Positions 15,040-32,000 of a stretch of 64,000 bases of DNA are shown one piece after another. Both the position numbers and the translations under genes were made by a program. Every line of letters begins with the position of its first letter. Positions within the stretch are counted from its first letter, which is position 1. Where the stretch lies: contig QPMI01000056.1 in assembly GCA_004431415.1 (NCBI GenBank), forward strand, positions 485,517-549,516. The letters are read 5' to 3'. A model generated the notes under the pieces. It made no database searches. It was given only the letters and a program-made list of their open reading frames with translations, and had not been told where the DNA came from. This DNA is from Cyanophora paradoxa CCMP329 (lineage: Eukaryota > Plantae > Glaucophyta).

Positions 15040-17877
15040 CTACTGCGGGGTGGTGTCCATTGGCGACGGCTCCGCGGGAGCCGGCGCTGGGGCCGGGGCG
15101 GCCGCGGGCGCCGGCGCGGGGCGCCGGGGCCGGGGGCGGCGCGGGGGCCGGCACGGGCGGGCGGGGCCAGGGACAGCCCCCGGCAGGGGCATCGCCGGCT
15201 GCGCGGGGGCGGGGATGGGGACCTGGGGGACGGGGGGACGGGGCGGGAGCGGGGCCACGGGGCCGCGGGGGCGGGCGGGCAGGCGGGCCAGGCGGGACGA
15301 TGGCGCCGGGGCGGCGGGGGCGGCGGCGGGGCTGCGGGAGATGGCGATCGGGGCGGGGCCGGGGCGGGCGGGGCGGGGGCGGGCGGGGCCGGGGCGGGCC
15401 CGGCGGCGATCGGCTGGTTGGTGATCATGCTCATCTTGGGGAGGGCGGCGCTGGGGTGGACGCCGGCCTCCGGGCCGGCACGCCCGGCGCGAGCAGCGTC
15501 GCCCCCGCGGGGAGGCCCCGGCCCGCGGCGCCATCGCCGGCGGCATCGGCATCATCGGCGGCATCGGCGGCGCCCCGGGCTGCGGCTTCAGCGGCGGCGG
15601 CTGCATGCCGGGCGCCGCGCCGGGGGCCGGCGCCATCGGCGGCCGCACGGGCGCCGCCCCGGGGATCGTGACTGCCTCCGAGGGCCCGGGGGCGCCGCCG
15701 GCCGGGGCAGGAACGGGCTGCGCGGCGGCGTGAGCTTACAGCTGACAGCGGAGACGGGGGCAGGGGGCAGGGCGGACGGCGTTGGGGTTGGCGGCGGCGG
15801 CGGCGGCGCGGCGCTTGCGGTGGAAGGCGTCGATGCTGTCCTCGTCCTCCTCGTCGCTGTCCGTGTCGGCGGCCGTCGAGCCGCCCTTCTTGGGGCGGGG
15901 CCCGTCGGCCCCCTGGTTGTCCTCCACGTCCGACCCGTCCAGCTCCCCCTCCCGCCGCACGTGCCGGTCCTTGTCCCGCTCTGCCGCCCCCCAGGGGCCC
16001 CTCAGGCGACGCGGAGGGCAGGGGAGGCGGGCGGGGCAGGGCGGGGCGCGCACGGGAGATGCGGACGTCGGGGTCGCGGCGGTCGTCGTCGTTCTCGAAG
16101 CGGAGCGAGTCGGGGGGGACGTCGTGGAAGGCGACGGAGGGCGCCGGCTCGATGTTGCGCAGCTGCTCGAGCAGCTTGATCCGGCACTTCTCCAGGTACT
16201 CCTTCCCGTTCAGGTTCTCCATGTTGGAGGCGGGGACGTGCAGCGTGTAGGTGGGCCCGTAGAAGTAGTAGTAGTCGTTGTAGGGGAGCTGGTCGGGGAG
16301 GTCGATGCCGAGGGCGATGGCGGTCTCGTTGGTCCAGCAGCGGGAGACGTTGCGCATGGTGTAGCCGCCGCCGCCGAGCATGAGAGTGGGCACGTTGAAG
16401 GAGCGCACGAAGCGGGCCGCCTCGGCGTGGCCCCGCAGGGAGAGGTTGAAGGAGCCGAGGCGGTCCCCCGAGAGCGAGTCCGCCCCGCACTGCAGCACCA
16501 CCGCCCCCGGCCGGTACCGCTCCATGATCGCCGTGATGATCTGCGCCCCGCGCCTCGGCCCCCGCCCTCCCCGCCCCCGCGAGGGGCCCGCTGGGCCGGG
16601 CTCAGCGGGCGCACGGGCTTGAAGTTCTCGAGGAAGGAGTCGTCGTCCAGGCCATCGTTGAGCGGGAAGTTCACCGCCGTGTTCTTGCCCTTGCCGTACC
16701 CCACGTCCTGCGCGAGCCTCAGCGGCGGCGGGGGGCGGGCGGCCGGCGGGGGGGCGGGGCCGGCGCACGAGGAGGTGGCCGGTGCCCGGGAAGTAGTCGC
16801 CGAACTTGTGGAAGGAGCAGGTCATGACGCGGTCCGTGCAGTAGAAGGCCTCCTCCACGCCGTCCCCGTGGTGGATGTCGATGTCGATGTACAGCACCCG
16901 CTGGTGGTACCTGCCACCGCCGGCCCCCGGTTGGGGCGCCGGCGCGCGCGCGCGGCCGAACGAAGCAGAGCGCACTTGAGCAGCTCGAGGATGGAGAGGA
17001 CGATGTCGTTCACGTAGCAGAAGCTGCGGGGGGCGGCTCGGAGGGGCGGCGGATCAAATGCGCGGAAGCGGCGCGGGCGCACCCCGAGGCCTCGCTCTTC
17101 TTGGCGTGGTGGCGGCCGCCGGCCCAGTTGATGCAGATGTCCGCCTGCTGCTGGTTGAGCTTCACCGCCCCAGCTGCCCCGCGCCGTCAGCCGCGCGGCG
17201 CGCTGGCGTCCCGCGAAGGTACCGATGGAGCCGCCGGCGGAGATCTGATTGAACTCGTACAGCCCGTCGAAGATCGGGTTATCGAAGTTCACGTTGACTG
17301 CGAGCCGAGTCGTTTGGCGGGAGCGGAGAGAAGCCGAGGGCGCGGCCGGACGCACAGCGCTGCAGGGCGGCCTGGTGCTCCTGCGCGGTTTCAGGCGTGA
17401 CGTGCTTCATGAATTGAATGTAGTCGTCCGCGTGGAAGCGGGTGAGTTCGTTGTCGGACGCGTAGTGCGGGCGCTGTCGGGGGCAGGTCAAGGAACTGCT
17501 CGAAACGCTTCATCGCGGCTGCTCTGGGCGCGGGATAACGCAACAAGCCCCACGCGGTACGCGGCTTGCGCAAAGGATACGACAATTTCCATGTGATCGA
17601 GCACGCCGTAGTTGTGGAGCAGGTTGTGGACCATGCGCACAATGTGCGGCTTGTGAGGGTGGCCCGGTCCGAAATAAACTGCACGAGGAAGCCGGCGCGA
17701 TTAGAGGCCGGCGTGTGGACGGAGGCGCGAGGCACGCACAGTTCCCGACATCGGGCTACGAAGCGAGGCGCAGAATCGAACCGAAGAAAGAGGTCAGCGT
17801 CTCCAGAGGGCGACGCGCAGCTGGGGGCGTGGAGCGACGCGCACGTTGTAAAAGTAGCTAACTCGCCGGTCGGGCAT
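15040..17877 (-). CDS. Class I histone deacetylase (RPD3/HDAC1-like) with long Pro-rich C-terminus
   Basis: [11 protein letters not shown]|PDVGN(16-nt exon 17740-17755)[12 protein letters not shown]; [19 protein letters not shown]; [20 protein letters not shown]; [13 protein letters not shown]; [12 protein letters not shown]; LGGGGYT; catalytic residues intact. Confidence 0.95.
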
Positions 17878-18246: not shown

Positions 18247-20305
18247 ATGACAGCTACAACGCGAACTGCAGAAGAGAAGCTAAAGGTGCGCGACTCAGAG
18301 TGACGGCGGCGGTCAGAGTTCTCTTGCAGTCTAGTGCTAACGGGGCTGAACACCTGGGTCCCGCGACGTGCTCCCCCCGCACGGATACGGTGGCGGGGAT
18401 CGCAGCGCTCGCGGCTACCGGAGCGGCGTGGGAGATCGCCCGGGGTCGGCGTCGGGCTGAGGCGGGGCGGCGCAGGAGGTGCTGGAGGAGCTGACCTGCC
18501 CGATCTGCCTCGAGTTCTTCGTCGAGCCGCGGCTCCTGCCCTGCTCCCACACCTTCTGGTCCGCCCGCCCCACCTCGAGCCGCAGCCCGGCGCGGCTGAG
18601 CTGAGCGCGCTTCTCCCAGCTACGGGTGCATGCGGGGGCTCGTGAGGAGCCAGCACGTGAAGTGCCCGACGTGCCGGAAGGTGACGCTGCTCCAGGAGGA
18701 GGGCATCCGCTGCCTTCCGCGCAACCGCGCCCTCAGCAACATCGTCGCCAAGATCCGCGACAACCACCCCGAGCACTGCTGTCCGCCCCGCCCCCGCCCG
18801 CCCCCCGCCCCGCCCCGAGCCGGGCTGAGCGGGGCCTGCAGCGGGGTGCCGGGACCTGCTGGCGACCGTCTCGTGCCAGGCGTGCGGGGGCAAGTTCTAC
18901 TGCGACGAGTGCGCGGCGAAGGCGCACGCGCGGCTCGCCCCCACGGCGCCCCCGCACCCCCTGGAGAGGGTCCCGCCGCCCCCGCGCCGCGACGGCCGCT
19001 CCGCCGCCGACGCCGCCGCCCTCCGCGCGAGCTACAAGTGCCGTGCGCGCCGCCCGCCCCCCCGCCCGGCGCGGGGCGCTCGGGCGGCGGGGGCTGACGG
19101 GGGCGCAGCGGTGCACAGCTACAAGGAGGTGCGCTTCTACTGCCTGACGGACGGGGCGTCGGTGTGCAAGCACTGCATCCTCAAGGGGGACCACCTCGGC
19201 CACCGCTACGTGCTCCTCAAGGAGGGGGCCATGCGCGCCCGCACGGCCCTCTACGCGGCGATCAAGGGCGCGCAGGGCCTCGTCGCGAGGCTCGAGGAGT
19301 CCTCCCGCGCCCTCCGCTCCGCCCTCCTCGGCGAGGACGCCGCCTCCGCCCCGGACGCCCTGCCGCCGCCGCCGGCGGAGAGCGGGGAGGGGCCGGGCGG
19401 GGGCCGGGGCCGGGGCCGGGAGCTGCTGTGCCGGGCCCGGGAGGTGCGGGCGGACGTGGAGGGGGGGGTGATGGAGGCGGAGCGGGTGATCCGGGAGGGG
19501 GACTGCCTCTCGATCATCCACATGCGGGAGGACTTCGACGCCCTCCTCGCCTCCCTCCGCCCCGACGCCCTCCTCGCCGACGCCACACACTTCCTCGCCC
19601 CGGCCCCCGCCCCCGCCCCCTCCGACGCCCCCGCCCCGCCCCCCTCCCCGCACCCCCTCCCCGCACGCCCCGCCCTCCCCGGCCGCCGCGGCGGGGTCCG
19701 CCGGGGCGAGGAGCCGGACGCCGACGCCACCGGAGGGGTGGCGCTGGGGCGGGCGTCGGCGGTGCTGGCGGTGGCGCTGCAGCGCGTGGCCTCCGCGGGG
19801 TCCCTCTCCGAGCGCGACCGCGACCCCGAGGCGCCCCGCCGCCCGCCCCCGTCCCGCGAGCCTGACCGCCCCGCCCACCCCCACGAGCGCCCCCCCCTCG
19901 CCCTCCCCGCCCTCAACTCGCCCGCCTCGGCGCCGGCGGTCGAGCGGCCGCGGGGTCGGCGCACGCGGCGGCGATCCTGGCGCGGGGCGCGGGCGGGAGC
20001 TGCAGCGCTCCCTCTCGCAGAGCCCGCGGCACCAGCGGCCCTCGGGCACCGACTCGGACGCCGCGCCGGGCGAGGACGACGCGCCGCCGGGGCTGGCGCC
20101 CCCGCGCGGCCTCCGCGGCGGCCTGCAGGCGACCCTCGCGCCCGAGGCGGAGGGCGACGAGGGGCGCGCCTCGGCCTCGGCCTCGGGGCGCGGCTCCTCG
20201 CCCTCGCCGGTCCCCAGCATCGTCGCCGAGCTGCGCCGCCTCGGCACGCACCCCGTCTCCTCTCCCAACCTCGGCCTCCCCCACGCCTTCTCCGCCCCCC
20301 GCTAG
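18247..20305 (+). CDS. RING-HC + B-box (TRIM-like) E3 ligase with low-complexity tail
   Basis: [41 protein letters not shown]; B-box-like segments CQACGGKFYCDECAAKAH and H...RFYCLTDGASVCKHCILKGDHLGH; then a coiled coil. Confidence 0.87.
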
Positions 20306-21550
20306 CACCCGCCCCCTCCCCCGCTTTTTCTCGTGACCTCGTCACCCCAGAATATTCATGCATCCGTCAAATTTGTTCTAGTAATGCGCGGTTCTCGTCT
20401 TTGTAGATGCCGTGGCTTCCAGCCTGCCAGCGCTAGCGCCGGCGCCAGCTGCAGCGCCCGCCGTTTTTGGCGCCCGCCGCGCCGGCTTCTTTGAAATTCG
20501 TATTATATGCTTTTAGATACATAGCTAGAGTTTCAATACATCCAATATCCAGCCTCCGGGCGCGCCGCGCCGGACGCCCCTGCATGTGTGCGCTTAAAGC
20601 TTCGCACTTCGATCGCGAGTTCGAAACGGCGCCATGCCATGATCATATGCATGATGCCTCCCGATCCCGATCGATCTCTTTGATTTGATCTCTTAAAAGG
20701 TTCAACGGTTAACCGTACATGGCCGATGCATATGGTACGGGGGCGGCCCGGCGGGAGGGAAGGACGGAAACGCATTAAATATAGAAGCGATAGCGCATTT
20801 TACGTGCACATCGCGATCGATCAATCATTTGCAAAATAAAACTATTGATATTCGCGATCGAGGCGAATTAGATCGCGAAACACGTTTGATCCAATTAATT
20901 AGAAGTTATAATTAAAGCGCATTTCGCCAATGGGCACTAAAAATCGCCCGCGGCCGATAAGTTAAAGCGCCCGCGGCCCGGGCGAGAATTAAAATGCTGA
21001 TTATGAGATGATCATGATCATGCCGCGGCAGGCCGGCCGGCCGCGGGCCGGGGCGCCCGCGGCTGAGAAATTAAATGCTGAGATGACGTCGACGGTGCAG
21101 CACATGCAGCTGCAGGCGCCGGGTGGGGTACATATATATCTAGAAACTTGCGAGGCGACGTCGACTGCGGCTGCAGCTGGAGCTGCGAGAGATGCAAACG
21201 CGCTCGCACGACCGTGGTCGCCGTCCGGATGACGATGCAGAGAGCGATCGCGAGTGGGGTGCGTCGACTCAAATTTCTCCGGGATCGATATCCTGTCAAA
21301 TTCATGGCGAGCGCGCGCCCCGGCCCCGCGCGCGCGCCGCGGCGCGTTGCATGCATGTTAACTAGCTATAGACATCCCATATTTTGGGCGTTTGGATCAT
21401 CTAGCCGGGGAAAACAGTGCACGTGATCATGACCGGTCGCGCGTCGCAGAAATTGATCGCGCTGATCCCGACGTCGCCGCGGCTTCGAGCTGCCTTCCGC
21501 AAGCACGATCGCGACCGCGGCGCGCCGCTGCAGTCCGAGCATTGAGCAGA

Positions 21551-24500
21551 ATGGAGGAGGCGATGCGCGATGTCGACGAGGAGAGTGCACCCGAAAACCC
21601 AGATTTGACGTCGACTTCGAATTCGCGCTCGAAACGGCGCCATGCGCATGCCCCTCCGGCTCCGACGTCGACGTCGGCGACGCAAGAAGGAGACGCACCA
21701 GGTATCAGCGCTGATTACCCGCGATTGCGATGGCCATGGGCTCCCTCGAATATTAAATATTGCAATCCGCGCATGCATGTGCGCAGGAGTTTTGATTTCT
21801 AGATCTGATTGCAAGCGGGCGCGAAGGGCGTCGACGTCCGCGAATTCGAATTCGAATTCGACGCCGGCCTCATCATATTCGAATTTCACCCACGATTTCG
21901 ACATCGATCGCGATCGGGAAGCCGCTGCCGATCTAGATGCCGAGCCGGATCCGGAGCTCGAGGACTACGATCGCTCGCGATCGGGTACGCCTTGAATATT
22001 CATGATTGAAGAATCGATTATTCACCATCAATCATGCAAATTAAATTGATGCGTGCGATTTTTTGCGCGGGTTACGCGAAATTGTTGTCGACGTCGGCAG
22101 CTGCACATGCGCATATGCATATGCATGCAGCCAGCTCGAGCTCCATGGCCAGCTCCGCGGCCGGCTCTAGATCTCGGCGTGCGCAGCCCAAGATCAACCC
22201 GTTCTGTCAGCTGCAGCGCGATGGTGGCCCCCCGGCTGGCGCGATGATGCTTATCTTCAGCCGCGTGGCGGAGGACCCGCAGTCTCTCATCTCCCTGTCC
22301 CGCGTCGACAGCTGGTTCCGCATGATGCTGACGACGGAATCCGCCGCCACCGACGAGCTGTGGCGGCGCGCGTTCTTGGCGCTGCCCGTGGACGTTCTGG
22401 AGGCGGCGCGGGACGCGGGCGTGGACGGCCGCGACCAGCCGCGGCGTGCAGTCGAGCTGGCGTTCCCAGGGCCCTGCGGCGGCTGCGGGGCGACGCGGGC
22501 GAAGGAGCTGCGCACCCGCTGGGGCCTCCTCATCCGCGCCTGCCACTTCTGCTTCCGCTACAACACCATTGGAGACTACGAGGTTGGTCGTCATCGCGGC
22601 CTACTCGAGCACCTCCGGCGAGAGCGCGTCGAAGGGTGGCAGAGGTCGTTCGGCTACAGGTACGGCAGGGGTGAAAAAGTGGAGTACGATCGGCTTCTGC
22701 GCTCCAGTGTGGTGGCTGTGCTGCGCTCCAGCGGCGCCAGCGAGGAGACGATCGAAGCCGTCAAGCCGCGCGACAGGCGAACGCTTCTCAGCATTGCGGT
22801 CAAGGCCGCTGGGCTCAAAGTCGGCAAGGCGAGCTTGACTGACGCCTTCAAGGCCGCCGTCAAGAAGCGCACCAAGCCGGACATCAATCTCATGAAAACG
22901 ATTCGCGAGGAGATCAAAATCAAGCTGAAATCCAGGCAAGTGCGCGTGCACATATGCATCGCAAAGCACTTAATTCGTGCTAAAGATAAAGCGCTTGATC
23001 GATGTCATGACTTGGAATAATTAAATCACCAACGAATTCTTATTATCGATCAATCCTTTCGCTCATGCACATGTTCCGCAATCGATGTCGTGACGAATTT
23101 AATTTGCAGCGGGCCCGGGGGTGCTGGTGGCCGCGGATCCGCGCAAGCAAGCTCCGGATCCACATGTACAGCTGCATCTCCAGCCAATCCGGCTTCGAAT
23201 TCAGAGAGTCCACATGCACAAGCACTCCTGTCCGTTCGTGTTCGAAATAGCCAGGCCACAAATTGTTTTCTTCTAGACTACAAATTCTTCTAGACTAGCA
23301 AGTTCAGCGAACCACTCTTTCTGATCGCGATTTATATATATATCGGCAGAGGGCCGGCTGCGGCTGCTTCGAAGGGCCGGAGTTCGAGTTTAAATTTGAA
23401 GCGACCACGCGAAAGCCCCAGATACGGCGCCCTGGATTGGGTGGCCTTCTTCTGCCGGGGGGGAGTCACGGCAAAGAGGCTCGCTTTCGAGGACAAGGGG
23501 ATCAGCGAGCGGAGCTTTGCCGAGGTTCAATTGCAATTGATTCTGCGACGCAATCCGGAGATCTGTTGTTTTGGTGAACGTTGACTTCCAATTAATATTG
23601 CGTACGCATGCGCATGCGCAGGCATCGGAGTATTTCTACGACTTCTTCAAACAGTGTGTCAATGTCGACCTGGCCGCGTCGAAATCGTTTCATGAGCACT
23701 TCCAAAATTACGCCGAGGTACTTTTAATTTACTCCCATACAAGATTTGAGTTTTGAATCCATGTCATGATCATGATCAGAACGAGCTGAAATTCGCCCGC
23801 CACTACATTCCGAAGTGCGACATGCCCGCCGCTTTCTCTACAGAAGGGGATCCGATTATCCCTTAGATATAATTAGATATTCTATATAGATCTATATAGA
23901 TCCCTTACATTATCCTATAGATCTATATAGCTATATTCTCAAGTAATTTAAATTTAAATGTAAAAGCGACGTCTTGGAATTCGGATTCGTCTTATTCCAA
24001 TTTAAAAAGCGATCGCGATGGCGCCGGCTCGCTATATTGATCTCGATTGGATCTAGATTTAAAGTTTTTCTGGATCAAAACTGTCCTACGAACAGATTTT
24101 TTCTGACACTTTGTTTGCAACAAGATTCGAACGGATTGAGGAGACGCCTCGAACGCTGGCGGAGTCACTGACGGGGCTCCCTGTGAATCAGAAGGGGCGC
24201 GGCGAGGCCTGCCGCCTGATGCTGCCCGTCTTTGCCGAATTCGCGCACCTGGTCGCGGAGGAAGACGCAGCGCGGGCGGCGGGAGAAATTCGCCGAAGGC
24301 TGCGCCAGGAGGAGATCGTCGATTCCGCGACCGACCTGCGCCAGGTAATTACGAAATTGTAATGCAATAGCAGTATACGTATATATCGATTTTACGCCTG
24401 ATAAGAAGATATAATATATATATGCATTTTATATGCTCGCGATCGCAACTATGATCGAAATACCGGTACGTATACCGGTATTTATGCGATCCGGATCCTG

Positions 24501-27500
24501 ATTATGATATCGACGGCATATATATACCCGGTCGAGATCACGGCATGCGCACATCTACAGCCGGCGCCGCGCCGCACCGATCGATATATCGCGAGTTTCT
24601 GTACATGTAACTGCGCATGCTTGCAATTGTGCGCAGCCGCACACGTGGTACCCTGCAGCGCGTGCAATGAATCGGATTGTCACGTTTCACTCAGGGTACG
24701 TATACGCAAAAATTAGACATACACGAAATGGAATTCGAAGTCGAAAGCTGCACCTTCAAGAGGGGTTCTGATGGCCATGGTCGCACTTCTCTCCGCGGCA
24801 GGGAGACGAACAGCGGGAAGACGCACGCGGCGCTACAGGCCCTCGCCGCAGCTCAGAGCGGCATCTACTGCGCCCCACTACGTCTCCTTGCCCGCGAGGT
24901 GCTGCACGCGCGGCTGCGCTCGCCAGCCCCGTGGGAGATTGCAATTGCAGCCCTCGGCCTAGCTATGGGACTCGGCTTGCTTGATCATAAAATAATTCAC
25001 CACTGTTTTGCTAGAAATAATTTAATTTTCCTCTGACCCTTTAGGAAAAGTACTAGTACTATAGCTAGTTGAATATCTTGATCATGATACATGGATATCG
25101 ATCTTGATCGATCAACTCCAGATCGTTTTGACAATCGATATCGTGCGTATAGGTGTATGAGGCGCTGAACGAGCGTGGCGTCCGATGCGATCTTCTTACG
25201 TGCGTATGTTCGATGAGTTCTTCTTATCAATGCCATGGCCAAGCTATACTCTGCGCCAGAAGAAATTTATTTATTCTGCGCGCAGCTGCAGAATAAATAA
25301 AACCTCACGTGCACAAAAAGAAAGAATGCACGTTGTACAAACTAGTCGCGGATCGGAGGGGCTAAAGTTAACATTAATATCAGAAATTGAATGCGCTACG
25401 AATCTCGATCAATATCATTTTCAGAGCTCGAGTATGGTTTCTAACTTTTAATTTGCATTAATATTCTCAGGGGTCAAGAGAGCTTGAGCTGGAAGATGGC
25501 TCCAGCGCGCGCACAAGCTCGAAAGAACGGCGATTTTGCTGACGAAAGCGACTGTGGCTCTCACGTGAGTGATCATTAGTATTGAACTCGCGTTTCTGAT
25601 GATGACAACGTCAACATTAACATGTGCGTGTGCAGGTGTCGTGCACTGTCGAGATGGCGAGCACAGATCAGCGGTACGACGTGGCCGTCATCGACGAGGT
25701 TCGCATTCATGCATGCGCTCTAGATCTATTACTGAATAGTAATGATCAAGATTCCGAATTCTAGAAATTAAATTGCTTTTATTGCCAGTTGAAACTGCCG
25801 CCAGATCCAGATGATCGGGGACCCCTCCCGCGGCGACGCATGGACGCGAGCCCTGCAGGGGCTTCTCGCCCCCGCCGTGCACGTCTGCGGGAGTCCCTGC
25901 GTGGAGGAGCTGGTCCGGAGGCTGTGCGCGCTGCAGGGCGACAGGCTTGAGGTGCTTCGGTACAATCGGCATCTCGAGCTGCGCTGCGAGACGACGCCCG
26001 TCACCTCGTGGGCTTCTCTGAGGCGCGGCGACTGCGTTGTCGGTTCGGAAATATCGTTTATATGTCTTTTTGCGTCGCAGATCTAGAGCGCCGGCTCTTA
26101 AGCTCACAATATATATTAATATTAATGCTGATACGTTGACGTTGCGTTAACGTTTAATAAATTAAAACGCCCTGCAGCGTTTTCGCGAAAGGATGTGTAC
26201 GATATCAAGCGGGAGATCGAGAACACGACCAGCTACAAGTGCTGCGTCGTTTACGGTGGTCTACCGCCCGAGACCGTGCGCGAAAATGATTGATCGTTCG
26301 AATATCAAGCATTAGTATAGGTTTTGAGAGACGGCATCGATATCGCAGCGTGTGGAGCAGGCGAAGCTGTTCAACCGACACTCAGATTCAGATGGCGGAA
26401 GCCATGCCATACTTGTCGCGACTGATGCCATTGGAATGGGTCTCAATCTGTCAGCACCTTAAGCTTTGCATGTGTTATGAACTCATAGATTTAGATGTAG
26501 ATGCCTATATATAATTATATATAGAATCCAGGATCCCTGCAGCTTGGGCCACCGATCGCGAGCCGAAACTGAAATTTGCGCAACGTTAACGACAAACTAA
26601 AACAAAACACGCGCAGGAACATTGGACGGATCGTTTTCTCGGACGTTCAAAAGTTTGACGGCAACACGACGCGGGCCCTCACCGGGCTGGAGGTGAAGCA
26701 GATAGCGGGGCGCGCGGGCCGATTCGGCGGGCGCTTCGAGGCGGGCTTCGTGTCGGCCAGGACCAGGGCGGACCTCGAGGAGGTGCGCACCAAGCTCCAG
26801 AAGCCCACGGCGATCGTCAAGGTGCGTATCTCGCGATCGAAGCGGGACCCTTGCCGCAATGCGCTATATTAAATCACACCTGGCCAACATTGATTTAATT
26901 TCAATCAACATCTCCTACCCCGACACGATTCTCCGGATTCCTCACTTAAGCTTGCGCATTCACGACCACGCGACGTGTACATGTACATGTTACAGGCGGC
27001 GGGGCTCTTCCCCTCCTTCGACCGGGTGAGAATATTCGCGGACGCAATGGAGCACGGGGCCTCTTTACACGCCATTTTGGTTCGCCACTCCCTTGCGCAT
27101 GCTCGGTCCTGCGGCACCGTAGCCCCCTGAATTCATATTTCTTCTCAAGCAAGCTTGTGCAGAAAGAGTTCACGAAAGTCGTCGACAACCGGCACCGGCA
27201 CGGGATTGATGAACAGCTCTATTTCCTTCGCAACATCAAAGACATGCTCGTGCGCCCGCGTCAAAATTATAAATGTGTCTAGCATGGATATCGTTTCAAC
27301 GTTAACGCGTCGATTTTTTGACCGCGGCCCGGCCTTAAGCTTCGAATTACATATTCGAGCTCGAATGCGCAGCGGGTAGCGGAGATTGTGGAGTCCAGAC
27401 CGGTCCCGCAGCTGAGCCTGCGCGACCGCTACACGCTCAGCACATCTCCGGCGCGGCTCGACAATCGCAAAGTCACCGAATGCCAACGCCTTCTCGTGCG

Positions 27501-28366
27501 TGAACATAAATTATATATAGTTGCAATGCACTGCGCAGCTGATCATCATTGCAATCGACATATATATATATATATACCACGAATCGCATCTACGTATACT
27601 TGCATGTGCTTATAAATTTTAAAACTTGAATATTGATCGAAGGCGAATGCAGGAGCAAGTGGCGATCGACCTGGGGCGAGGAGTGCAAGTGATTCGCCTG
27701 CCCGCCAAGCTCCACAGAGGGAATCTGTATCTGGCGCAGAGCTCGAGCGGAGCCTGCAGCCAAGAGGACATCAAGATTCTCGAGGGTGTTTTCTGCCCCA
27801 TGGCCAGCCGATGCGCGTAATTATAACCTAGGCCTACCGTAGTATATGTACAGCTGCAGCTGGCGCATGTGCACTGACTTTTCGAGCCTGCGCGCGCAGA
27901 GGAAATATCGGCGATCCAACTGTACCTCTGGCTCGCGTGAGCGCCCAAACCGGCTCTAGATCTAGATCTAAAAGCGCTTGCAGCTTCAGCTTGCTCAGAT
28001 CAATTTTAAGATCTAGAGTGATCTTAAAACATGCATATGTACATGTGCATATGCATGCGCAGGCACCAGATGCGGGGGCGGGCGAGTTTCCCAGACGTGG
28101 AGGAGGCGGCGGCAGGGCAGGAGAGAATCGGGGCGCTGCTGCACGGGGCTCTCCAGAAGCGGGTGACTTCGAGCAACGCGTACATGTACAGCGGCGGCAG
28201 GGGCTATAGCTACCGGCCCCGGGACGCGTTCGGCGACTTCTTCCGCGGATTCCGGTACACGCACGACCGGTACGAGTACGGCAGCGACGCCGACGAGGGC
28301 GAGGACGAGTACGACAGCGACGACATCGGCAGCGACGCGTACGAGTACGACAGCGACTGCGAGTAG
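21551..28366 (+). CDS. SUV3-family (SUPV3L1-like) SF2 helicase with an N-terminal F-box-like + CxxC/CxxC extension, about 20 exons; the 5' end may extend to ATG 21192
   Basis: Spliced by eye: TDLRQ|PHTWYPAARAMNRIVTFHSG|ETNSGKT, GIYCAPLRLLARE, CTVEM..VAVIDE|IQMIGDPSRGDAWTRAL, GDCVVAFSRKD, VYGGLPPET, LVATDAIGMGLNLNI.RIVF, KQIAGRAGRFG, AGLFP, LYLWL; acidic tail ends TAG at 28366. Upstream exons join in frame. Confidence 0.88.
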
Positions 28367-29057: not shown

Positions 29058-32000
29058 CTACCCCACGGGCGGCCTGTGCAACGCGCTGCTTGCTGTTTCT
29101 CCGCCGTCGCCGCCGCCAAGTTGGCTGGCAACCGGATCCGTTGCCCGTGCGAGCGCGCGGATCTCATTGGCACCCTCCACCTTGACGCCGGGGTACCGCT
29201 CCAGCACGGCCGCCAGCGCCCGCGCCGCCTCCTCGCGCTCGCCCTGCGTTCGCCAGCCGACAACTCGCCCGCACATGACGTCCTGTTCAAATGCGTCGGA
29301 GGGAATCCACGGAAGTGCGCATCTAGTCAAGGGAGCACAATCGCGAACCCAGAAGCGGTCATCGAGCTCCTCCTTGGGCGGCAGCCTCGGGTCTCGCAGC
29401 AGCTCGTCCACCCGCCGCACCGCCTCCGCCAAGCGCCCCTGATTGAAGTACCCCTGAGCCAGAGTCGTCAGGACCTGCTGCTCCGAGCCCGACAGAGGCG
29501 GGCACAGACCTTGGAGGTCGTGCGGAGCTTCAGCTCCGCCAGCATCTCTCGCATCGTCTCAAAGGCCAGGTCGACCTCGCCGCAGAGCGAGAGCGCCTGT
29601 GTGCACGCGGTGCAACAATCAGACGACTGGACTTGTGAGGTGCAGCACTAGTTCTTGATCAACGGCGACGCCATTGCACCTCAACGATGCTGCAGACGAC
29701 GTTTGCATTGACGTTGCGCAGCCCGCCGTGCTTTCCGTCTCGCAGAGCCTGCAAAAGGTCGTAGATCTTCGAGAGGCCCTCCCGCCCTCCCAGTCGCCCG
29801 TAGGAGTCTGATCGATTGCATGTGATTGAACGTATTGCAGTTGCATGCGGAGAAAACTGCGAACCAAAAATGCACGAAAACGCTTGAGCATCTAAATGAA
29901 TATCCCCATTTGCCGATGTATTAAGAAGCCTTCCGGCGATCTCCTGTGCCTCGTCGTGCTTCTCTAAGTTGCTGAACGCCTACGAAAGAGGGAAAGGAGA
30001 GGGAAAGGAGATGCGTCAACATCAAACCCACGAAGGTGAATGCAAGGCTGATGCATCCAAGACCTAGAAACGATGATCATGAGCACCTGTATGAGCGTGC
30101 AGGACAATATGGCATCTCGAAAAACGACATATGCGTCCTCCCGCACAATCTCATGCACATGCACAAGCATGTGTTGAAGATGAAAACCTGTAATGTCTCC
30201 GCCCTTCGCCGTCGCTACGAAAGAAGAAGAAATATGTAGTTCAGACCAAGCAACCAAGGAAGCTTCAAGATGTAAACCGAACCGATGGGTTTGAGAAGGG
30301 CGCTGAGGACGCCGGACGTGTCGTGTGCCGCCTGCCGCGCCATCTGAAGCCACTCCAAAGCGTGCTCCCACTGTCTCTCGGCCGCAAAGTGGTGTACCTT
30401 TTTTTTTTCAAAAAGCCCGCCCGGGCAATGTTCGTATTAAAAGGACAACAATTACCGCCCCGTCGCGCAATGTCCGACTGGGGGGGCACCGTCCGACTGC
30501 TCTACCTGCTCTGCGGCATAGAGGGGAGACGTCGTGCTACCCTGCCCTAGCTAGCTGCGAGCTATTATGAGGGAGCGGTGTGGAGTCGAGTCGGTCCTTG
30601 GCCCTGCAAGAGGGGGGGGGGGGGGGGGGGGGGAAGGCTCTGTTTGCCCTAGCTAGGAGCTATCTGTCGGAGTCTTGGCCCTGGGGGAGGGGGGGGGAGG
30701 GGAGGCGGGGCGCACGGGGCGTGGGGGGTGGCGGGGGCGGAGCGGAGGGAGGGGAAGGGGCGGGAGCGGGTGCACAGCGGGGTGGGGGGCGGCGGGGGCG
30801 GGCGCTGGAGGGCGGCCAGGGCGGGGCGCTGGAGCCGGAGGGCGGGGCGGGGCGCTGGAGGCGGAGGGCGGGGCGGGGCGCTGGAGCCGGAGGGCGGGGG
30901 CGGGTGCTGGAGCCGGAGGCAGGGCGGGGCGCTGGAGCCGGAGGCGGGGCGGGCGCTGGAGCTGGAGGGGGGCGGCGTGAGCCGGAGGCGGGGGGCGCTG
31001 GAGCGGAGGCGGGGCGGGCGCTGGAGCGGAGGGCGGGGCGGGCGCTGGAGCCGGAGGGCGGGGCGGGGCGCTGGAGCCGGAGGGCGGGGGCGGGGCGCTG
31101 GAGCCGGAGGGCGGGGGCGGGGCGCTGGAGCCGGAGGGCGGGGGCGGGGCGCTGGAGCCGGAGGGCGGGGCGGGGCGCTGGAGCCGGGGCAGGGGCGGGG
31201 CGCTGGAGCCGGAGGGCGGGGCGGGGCGCTGGAGCCGGAGGCGGGGCGGGGCGCTGAATCCGGAGGGCGGGGCGGGGCGCTGGAGCCGGAGGGCGGGGCG
31301 GGGCGCTGGAGCCGGAGGGCGGGGGCGGGGCGCTGGAGCCGGAGGGCGGGGGCGGGGCGCTGGAGCCGGAGGGCGGGGGCGGGGCGCTGGAGCCGGAGGG
31401 CGGGGCGGGGCGCTGGAGCCGGAGGGCGGGGGCGGGGCGCTGGAGCCGGAGGGCGGGGCGGGGCGCTGGAGCCGGAGGCGGGGCGGGGTGCTGGAGCCGG
31501 AGGGCGGGGCGGGGCGCTGGAGCCGGGGGCGGGGCGGGCGCTGGCGCCGGCGTCAGGGGCCGGCTTGGAGGCCGGGTCCGGGCGAGCCTCGTCTGGCTCT
31601 GGGGGGGGGACCGAGCGTACACGTCTCTGTACCGACCTCGGGGAGGAGGAGTCCGGGTGGGCGCCCTTTGGGCCCAGGCCGGGGGAGAGGGGGCGGGGGC
31701 GTGGGCCCGCGGGGCCTGGGCTCTGGGCGGGGGAGGGACCGGCGCGGGGCGCTAGGGAGTACTAGTTGGGCGTGGGCGCACCCCGCCGTAGTTGTACATC
31801 GGACGGCGCCGACGGCCCCGTCGCGCGGCGAGCTCGAGGCGGAGGAGAGAGGTCAAGATGCAGGTCGAGATCTGCAGGCGCGCGAGCACGTTCTGTAAGG
31901 ATGGGGCGGCGCGCGCGGCGCCTGCAGCATGACGGCGGCATTCGAGGGACAGTACTAGTGGCGGCGGCGCGCGACGTCGACGGTGGGTGCGTCATCTTAG

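Follow-up and report, generated by a model that had tools for sequence, protein, structure and literature searches.

A candidate gene joining an F-box-like zinc module to a SUV3 helicase in Cyanophora paradoxa

Known helicases and the Cyanophora locus

SUV3 is known almost exclusively for its part in the mitochondrial RNA degradosome, of which it is the helicase, and its nuclear roles are debated. FBH1 is a superfamily 1 (SF1) enzyme of the UvrD type which assembles into a Skp1-cullin-F-box (SCF) ligase. It is, to our knowledge, the only well-known helicase with an F-box of its own. FBH1 (FBXO18 in human, Fbh1 in S. pombe) is described as an F-box helicase, with the N-terminal F-box and the helicase contained in one polypeptide (PMC7913671). 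The present analysis concerns a stretch of 64,000 nucleotides (nt) from the glaucophyte Cyanophora paradoxa CCMP329 (contig QPMI01000056.1, positions 485,517 to 549,516), referred to as the window, in which a SUV3-type helicase is preceded by a module with an F-box-like fold and a candidate zinc knuckle. A literature search for SUV3 with an F-box found no description of this pairing.

Within the window, the module and an intact SUV3 lie adjacent to each other on the same strand and are connectable in frame. The balance of probability leans modestly towards one gene encoding one fused protein of approximately 1,070 amino acids (aa), module and SUV3 together, as predicted from the DNA. Exon 1 (~22145-22939) would be spliced via 23110-23237, 23350-23524, 23622-23717 and, probably, 23780-23814 into SUV3 at 24125-28366. 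This reading is preferred because the coding signal of exon 1 (E1) ends at GT donors and restarts at an acceptor at 23110, the tail up to the stop codon scoring as intron; because the best exon chain connects exon 1 with exon 6 without loss of frame; and because exons 3-5 and the start of exon 6 are without an in-frame ATG. It is also preferred because the public model of a paralogous locus joins module and SUV3, and because close copies of the module were found only at two SUV3-linked loci. We infer a single mRNA, and likewise a partner and a cellular location for its product. A fusion gene had been proposed in an earlier note on this DNA. The proposal gains from the position of the module immediately upstream on the same strand, from the in-frame chain and from the second locus with a fused model; the database model of the locus itself, P0001, is split.

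FBH1 would be the closest functional analogue of such a protein. The helicase cores differ, being of the SF1 UvrD type in FBH1 and of the superfamily 2 (SF2) DExH, SUV3 type in the window. The window gene is also unlike FBH1 in that its F-box is recognisable at fold level only and lacks the Leu-Pro, in that a zinc knuckle follows the F-box-like domain, and in that the fusion is unproven. It shares the full set of core motifs with SUV3, SUPV3L1 and plant DExH18, as well as the domains DEXQc_Suv3, Helicase_C and Suv3_C_1, and its exons match SUV3 proteins of algae and bacteria in collinear order. The Walker A motif reads GETNSGKT in the window and in the paralogue, whereas SUV3 relatives have GPTNSGKT, GGPNSGKT or GPPNSGKT; the Cyanophora version still fits GxxxxGKT. 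The DExH18_N domain of the SUV3 relatives was not detectable in the window gene when searched exon by exon. The window gene differs from these relatives further in its long acidic tail and in having, instead of a plain presequence, a candidate module at its N-terminus.

The SUV3 helicase and its probable link to the module

All features of the locus described below are on the + strand. A local splice and frame check resolved SUV3 into 16 exons, running from 24125 to the stop codon at 28364-28366, with 662 stop-free codons and 15 introns of 71-292 nt, all of them GT-AG. The frame holds GETNSGKT (Walker A), DEIQ (motif II), and TDAIGMGLN and QIAGRAGR (motifs V/VI). Pfam was run exon by exon and matched DEXQc_Suv3 (PF22527) at 24803-24898 (E 4.7e-13), 25817-26038 (E 4.8e-12) and 25636-25698 (E 1e-05), Suv3_C_1 at 27373-27495 (25.6 bits against a cut-off of 22.5) and, weakly, Helicase_C at 26349-26447. 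The Pfam SUV3_C domain, which is split over exons, went undetected in these runs, and exons 2-6 taken singly gave no match. Collinear tblastn matches to four other SUV3 proteins were obtained on exons 7, 8 and 11-15. When the N-termini of seven SUV3 proteins were compared by phmmer with all stop-free segments of 21000-24900, only noise was returned, exon 7 excepted. Compared by eye, exons 3-6 may correspond to the DExH18_N domain. The earlier note had read a complete SUV3 core, a Glu for Pro exchange in Walker A and an acidic tail from the same DNA, all of which are upheld.

For scoring, a codon log-odds model and splice-site matrices were built from the checked SUV3 exons and introns, and splice sites are expressed as percentiles (for donors, among GT sites). 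Exon 6 (24125-24344), the N-terminal region of SUV3, scores +0.73 bits per codon and is 66% identical to residues 232-303 of the paralogue, P0002. Its AAG acceptor scores poorly, so that the exact 5′ edge is uncertain. An acceptor at 24096 was rejected, the 10 extra codons (24096-24125) scoring -0.99 bits per codon. Exons 7 and 8 (24637-24695 and 24802-24898) are placed by Pfam, tblastn and the motif check. A WYP-ARA motif is found in exon 7, and GETNSGKT crosses the junction between the two, mostly within exon 8. The helicase core continues over exons 9-15 (25153-25199, 25471-25564, 25636-25698, 25805-26042, 26178-26275, 26349-26449 and 26617-26821), in which DEIQ and motifs V and VI are located and which are placed by Pfam and tblastn. 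Exons 16-21 (26996-27079, 27163-27249, 27373-27495, 27653-27785, 27900-27936 and 28063-28366) contain the C-terminal domains of SUV3, identified by Suv3_C_1, frame and splice sites, and end in the acidic tail at 28260-28363, ahead of the stop codon. Since every catalytic motif is present in the core, the helicase should, judging by its sequence, be active as an ATP-dependent RNA/DNA unwinding enzyme.

Upstream of the SUV3 exons lies an open reading frame (ORF) at 22034-23020, the unspliced product of which has 328 aa. The coding part of exon 1 was placed at 22145-22939 on the basis of codon log-odds, donor scores and identity to P0002. The coding signal extends from ~22154 to 22933, at 0.24-1.17 bits per codon by a model trained on SUV3 exons only, and is negative on both sides. 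The stretch 22034-22153 gives a non-coding score of -0.54 bits per codon, and Met38 at 22145 is on that account the likely start, more so than the ATG at 22034. This choice leaves just 17 residues ahead of the module. A long presequence from the ATG at 22034 was rejected, as the stretch scores non-coding; residues 1-62 of the ORF contain no Asp or Glu and seven Lys or Arg, but 22034-22144 is part of that stretch. The start at 21192 with an acidic N-terminus that had been suggested previously was found to be unsupported, and the upstream acidic exons were discarded as being without consistent coding signal.

The other edge of E1 is the point at which the connection would be made. Its coding signal ends approximately 75 nt before the stop codon at 23018-23020, which would be used if exon 1 were left unspliced, and the 28 codons before that stop score -0.72 bits per codon with a GC content at third codon positions (GC3) of 0.39. 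Two consensus GT donors, 22939|GTGCGC at the 95th percentile and 22945|GTGCAC at the 94th, both of phase 0, sit where the signal drops. Coding-like composition resumes exactly at the acceptor at 23110, which is at the 97th percentile. Here the exon-chain search places exon 2′ (23110-23237), an arginine-rich linker in the frame starting at 23110, with +0.40 bits per codon and GC3 of 0.79. Its donor, 23237|GTGTTC, is at the 93rd percentile and leads in frame to exon 3.

The exon junctions first proposed for this region (22935|23110, 23229|23350, 23524|23622, 23717|23780 and 23814|24125) do keep phase, and some of their details require revision. The GC donor 22935|GCAAGT is possible, but the GT donors at 22939 and 22945 fit the introns of the gene better and GC donors occur in 0 of 15 checked introns. 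The exon proposed at 23110-23229 lies in DNA that is coding-like in the frame from 23110; in the frame formerly assigned to it, the score is -0.21 bits per codon with GC3 of 0.38, none of the checked exons falling below 0.58.

Beyond exon 2′, exon 3 (23350-23524) has an acceptor at the 96th percentile and scores +0.55 bits per codon. Exon 4 (23622-23717) has an acceptor at the 99th percentile and a donor at the 91st, and scores +0.33 bits per codon versus -0.47 and -0.81 in the other frames. Exon 5 (23780-23814) is doubtful; it has 35 nt, with +0.48 bits per codon over 11 codons and weak sites at the 75th and 69th percentiles. None of exons 3, 4 and 5 nor the start of exon 6 contains an in-frame ATG, and the first Met of exon 6 is a Leu in the paralogue. 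The best chain, from a search with an intron penalty, reads 22945 | 23110-23237 | 23350-23524 | 23622-23717 | (23780-23814) | 24125-24344; it is stop-free and in frame, with introns of 62-310 nt. The same search without the penalty was discarded, as it over-fitted tiny exons. The mean intron of C. paradoxa is 86 bp (PMC6704402). A direct intron of 1.2 kb between exons 1 and 6, such as the paralogue's model has, would be in frame too, yet atypical in length.

The N-terminal module and its relatives

Exon 1 most likely encodes, from the N-terminal to the C-terminal end, a helical domain of F-box fold, a C4 zinc knuckle and then more helices. When 1.84 billion representative proteins were searched exhaustively with HMMER, only two close matches were returned, the product of the window itself and the paralogue, both from SUV3-linked loci. 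The same search returned a few distant relatives at E 1e-6 to 1e-4, together with one false match to a repeat protein, and a word-seeded profile search added one relative. The distant relatives have 233-541 aa and are all stand-alone proteins without a helicase, originating from uncultured eukaryotes or sequencing runs. Family-wide conservation covers an F..LPEP..IL motif, LLSL..V..W and LW, and PR.LLRLAGF.GC.LCG...W....R.C..C, the stand-alone relatives keeping the same invariant Cys and Trp.

The stand-alone proteins P0003, P0007, P0004, P0006 and P0014 resemble the window module over its full length, from ...F..LPEP..IL...LLSL..V..W...LW through CxxC...CxxC to the helices that follow. They differ from it in having no helicase, in keeping the Leu-Pro and, in some cases, in ending with a C2H2 finger. 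P0003 is encoded by a single-exon gene (L001:2001-3278) on a eukaryotic metagenome contig of 16 kb, where no SUV3 adjoins it; fragments of a gene for an adaptor-complex subunit were seen downstream. P0006 / P0012 (Logan run ERR10034896, contigs of 2 kb) is a stand-alone relative of 541 aa, also without a helicase, which has an extra Cys-rich N-terminus and the core motif RVAEDPPSLVALSRVD, nearly as in the Cyanophora module. As the relatives share the module along the whole of exon 1, this exon has the appearance of a captured, once independent gene. The N-terminal module of the window would be the counterpart of a protein that stands alone in other eukaryotes. It may have been captured ahead of SUV3 in the Cyanophora lineage, with a later duplication giving rise to two diverged copies.

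The C4 zinc knuckle or ribbon occupies 22469-22603 and is proposed from conservation and from weak profile and structure matches. Its cysteines C148, C151, C170 and C173 (codons at 22475, 22484, 22541 and 22550) are unchanged in 8 of 8 family members. These are the four cysteines noticed earlier as CGGC-x17-CHFC, with the spacing corrected to CxxC-x18-CxxC. Profile matches of the zinc part are weak, to the zinc-ribbon ribosomal proteins eL43 and uS14 (E 0.16-3), and in structure comparison only assorted treble-clef zinc fingers were obtained, at Z 3-3.7.

The F-box-like helical domain covers ORF residues ~54-145 (22193-22468) and is proposed from sub-threshold Pfam matches, ESM language-model features, an AlphaFold2 (AF2) model and structure matches. 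The F-box-like stretch to which the earlier note drew attention is present in the ORF, at residues ~60-112. An AF2 model of the module, predicted from an eight-sequence alignment, reached a mean predicted local distance difference test (pLDDT) of 75 and a predicted template modelling score (pTM) of 0.67; a two-sequence alignment gave a pLDDT of 41 and was not used. When the model was compared with 48,161 PDB chains by exhaustive alignment, ranks 1-7 were all Skp1-bound F-box proteins (beta-TrCP1 in two entries, FBXO3, Cdc4, FBXO31, FBXW8 and Fbs2) at Z 4.2-5.3, aligned on the F-box and linker helices, and further F-box proteins appeared at lower ranks.

A fold search of the ESM Atlas placed an F-box cluster in its first row. 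This cluster, from Mucoromycota, consists of proteins of ~130 aa, 92% of which have a Pfam F-box, and resembles the module in overall shape over 116 residues, with template modelling (TM) scores of 0.53/0.59; the likeness is one of shape, between predicted models only. Language-model features of the module point to F-box clusters at 0.96, with a low recognition value. The Atlas also contains a 69-member cluster labelled Viruses, of hypothetical proteins of 367 aa, which matches the module with language-model features at 0.96 and a TM score of 0.63 over 126 residues.

Results at the level of sequence speak against an F-box. The Pfam family F-box-like (PF12937) matched the module at 11.5 and 13.3 bits (E 0.26 and 0.073), below its cut-off of 24.3, and 3 of 8 family members at best E 0.012. 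Sequence profile searches of the PDB with the whole module found zinc-ribbon ribosomal proteins and no F-box; with the helical part alone, they found again no F-box, and a weak match to a 48-residue fragment of DNA polymerase iota. Foldseek of the model against the PDB gave nothing below E 1, and the structural Z scores quoted above are modest, at 5.3 or less. At helix 1 the stand-alone relatives read Leu-Pro-Glu-Pro or Leu-Pro-Asp-Gly; in the window copy this is replaced by Leu-Gln, followed by 7 inserted residues. Among the features by which F-boxes contact Skp1, Leu-Pro is the most strongly conserved, and its absence from the window copy makes Skp1 binding doubtful. The check by profile and structure that had been suggested for the F-box thus divides, with Pfam below its cut-off and structure comparison ranking F-box proteins first to seventh. 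As modelled, the module may reasonably be called an F-box-like fold; as an F-box it is not proven, the sequence level being negative.

It is to this evidence that the strongest of the alternatives appeals, given a little less than an even chance here. It accepts the fusion and holds that the module does not function as an F-box, being instead a helical and zinc-finger domain which binds nucleic acid or protein and has no link to SCF. The sub-threshold Pfam scores, the PDB profile searches without an F-box and the replacement of the relatives' Leu-Pro-Glu-Pro, with what is generally known of Leu-Pro as a Skp1 contact, are all consistent with it. It sits less easily with the top seven structural matches, every one an F-box protein aligned on its F-box, with the F-box cluster placed first in the Atlas fold search, or with the direction in which the language-model features point.

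One gene or two

The question of whether the module and SUV3 are transcribed together is complicated by the public gene models. P0001, a database protein of 258 aa that is 100% identical to the window locus, ends at the stop at 23020 and represents a split model; some pipeline has therefore split the locus. The paralogue P0002 (EukProt EP00741_Cyanophora_paradoxa_P002497, tig00000076_g2421.t1) has a module 63-71% identical to that of the window up to 22939, too diverged for an allele, and is for this reason read as a paralogue. The paralogous locus is like the window in that its module, in which the four Cys recur, precedes a SUV3 that likewise has ETNSGKT. In its public model, the module is joined straight to the equivalent of exon 6, the equivalent of exon 7 is skipped and the protein ends at 357 aa after Walker A. 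As this model omits a conserved exon and stops after Walker A, it is probably an ab initio product. The public models of C. paradoxa are BRAKER1/Augustus predictions, for which the authors call for manual curation (PMC6704402).

The earlier note had also advised a search of the genome for a canonical SUV3 and for paralogues of like architecture. The second locus, P0002, was found. When the part of P0002 covering exon 6 and Walker A was searched against proteins of 196-625 aa, neither a SUV3 model for the window nor a canonical Cyanophora SUV3 was returned. Exact look-ups of the gene elsewhere, made with P0002, P0001 and the 328-aa unspliced ORF, gave no entry.

A less probable alternative, and on the whole an unlikely one, is that the locus consists of two separate genes, one directly after the other. 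The first would be a single-exon gene for the module, ending at 23018-23020. The second would start from an ATG at 23065-23067, continue via 23110-23237 and encode a SUV3 of the usual kind, probably mitochondrial and rich in arginine at its N-terminus. Several observations count in its favour and against a fusion. P0001 ends precisely where the first gene would end. The ATG at 23065 lies 44 nt beyond the point where the unspliced ORF terminates, shares its frame with exon 2′ and opens a stop-free chain into SUV3. The connecting chain has weak points in the donor at 23524 (40th percentile), the acceptors at 23780 and 24125 and the tiny exon 5. The one public model that does fuse the two parts, P0002, is sloppy. 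All distant relatives of the module stand alone, including the one on the 16-kb contig without an adjoining SUV3. The genome of C. paradoxa is intron-rich and dense, genes often lying end to end and their untranslated regions overlapping, and its models are in need of curation (PMC6704402).

Set against these points, the gap between stop and ATG is just 44 nt, and both of its flanks score as non-coding, the last 28 codons before the stop as given above and the 15 codons of 23065-23109 at -0.59 bits per codon with 42% GC. Strong donors and a strong acceptor lie exactly at the composition boundaries, and both parts are intact and adjacent at two diverged loci. Overlapping exon 2′ in its best-scoring frame is an ATG-started, arginine-rich ORF of 61 codons (23065-23250), which might serve SUV3 as an alternative mitochondrial presequence or else be a relic.

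A third alternative, in which an upstream promoter yields the fusion and a promoter in intron 1 yields a module-less SUV3 from the ATG at 23065 with its arginine-rich N-terminus as mitochondrial presequence, agrees with the presence of a fused chain as well as an internal ATG, each in frame, with the arginine-rich exon 2′ and with the failure to find a third, canonical SUV3 among proteins of up to 625 aa, but is a purely structural argument, a canonical copy longer than 625 aa may lie elsewhere outside that search range, and it is accordingly judged very improbable.

On the favoured reading of a single fused gene, the module would probably act as a protein-binding adaptor by which the helicase is tethered to a partner. 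The obvious candidate for this partner is Skp1/SCF, unproven and weakened by the absent Leu-Pro. A fused form that begins with a folded module and not with a long presequence probably works outside the mitochondrial matrix. The coupling of SUV3 to SCF through the module is an attractive idea that is unproven and is weakened in the same way. In its fullest form, the idea would make the protein an SF2 counterpart of FBH1: a SUV3 with its own F-box in an SCF ubiquitin ligase, acting in the nucleus or cytosol, for example at R-loops or stalled forks, with the internal start codon supplying the mitochondrial enzyme and with the arrangement kept in two diverged copies. This version is speculative and improbable as it stands.

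Surroundings and significance

The DNA of the window is GC-rich and its introns are AT-richer. The gene itself lies in an AT-richer stretch, with dense chains of short palindromes at 20400-22150 and in the introns between 22940 and 28060. These include runs of GAATTC/TCGA at 21840-21870, of ATGCAT/CATATG at 22100-22130 and 28030-28060, and of TGATCA at 23760-23780. The run at 22100-22130 is located inside the 5′ part of the ORF that scores non-coding.

Upstream on the + strand is a B-box zinc-finger gene at 19111-20406 (zf-B_box, E 3.5e-07 at 19111-19500). It is preceded by an ORF at 18630-19097 (+), which is RING-like by eye and has no Pfam match, so that the neighbour at 18630-20406 (+) looks like a TRIM-like gene. 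A histone deacetylase gene is found at 15431-16975 on the - strand (Pfam Hist_deacetyl, E 3e-34). Downstream, an ORF of 124 aa at 29058-29432 (-) is of ordinary, non-repetitive sequence, had no match in Pfam and probably belongs to the neighbouring gene as an exon.

The public C. paradoxa models are inconsistent across the two paralogous loci, one being split and the other fused and truncated, and both need manual curation. If module and SUV3 are separate genes, the locus is ordinary save for a small, uncharacterised F-box-like/zinc family. If they are fused, the combination of SUV3 with a zinc module of F-box shape would be novel as a domain architecture, and would show a helicase coupled, for the second time and independently, to an adaptor for protein binding or for a ubiquitin ligase. 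The host is a glaucophyte, a lineage in which little functional work has been carried out, and in a fused protein the partner of the module would provide a handle on the roles of SUV3 outside mitochondria.

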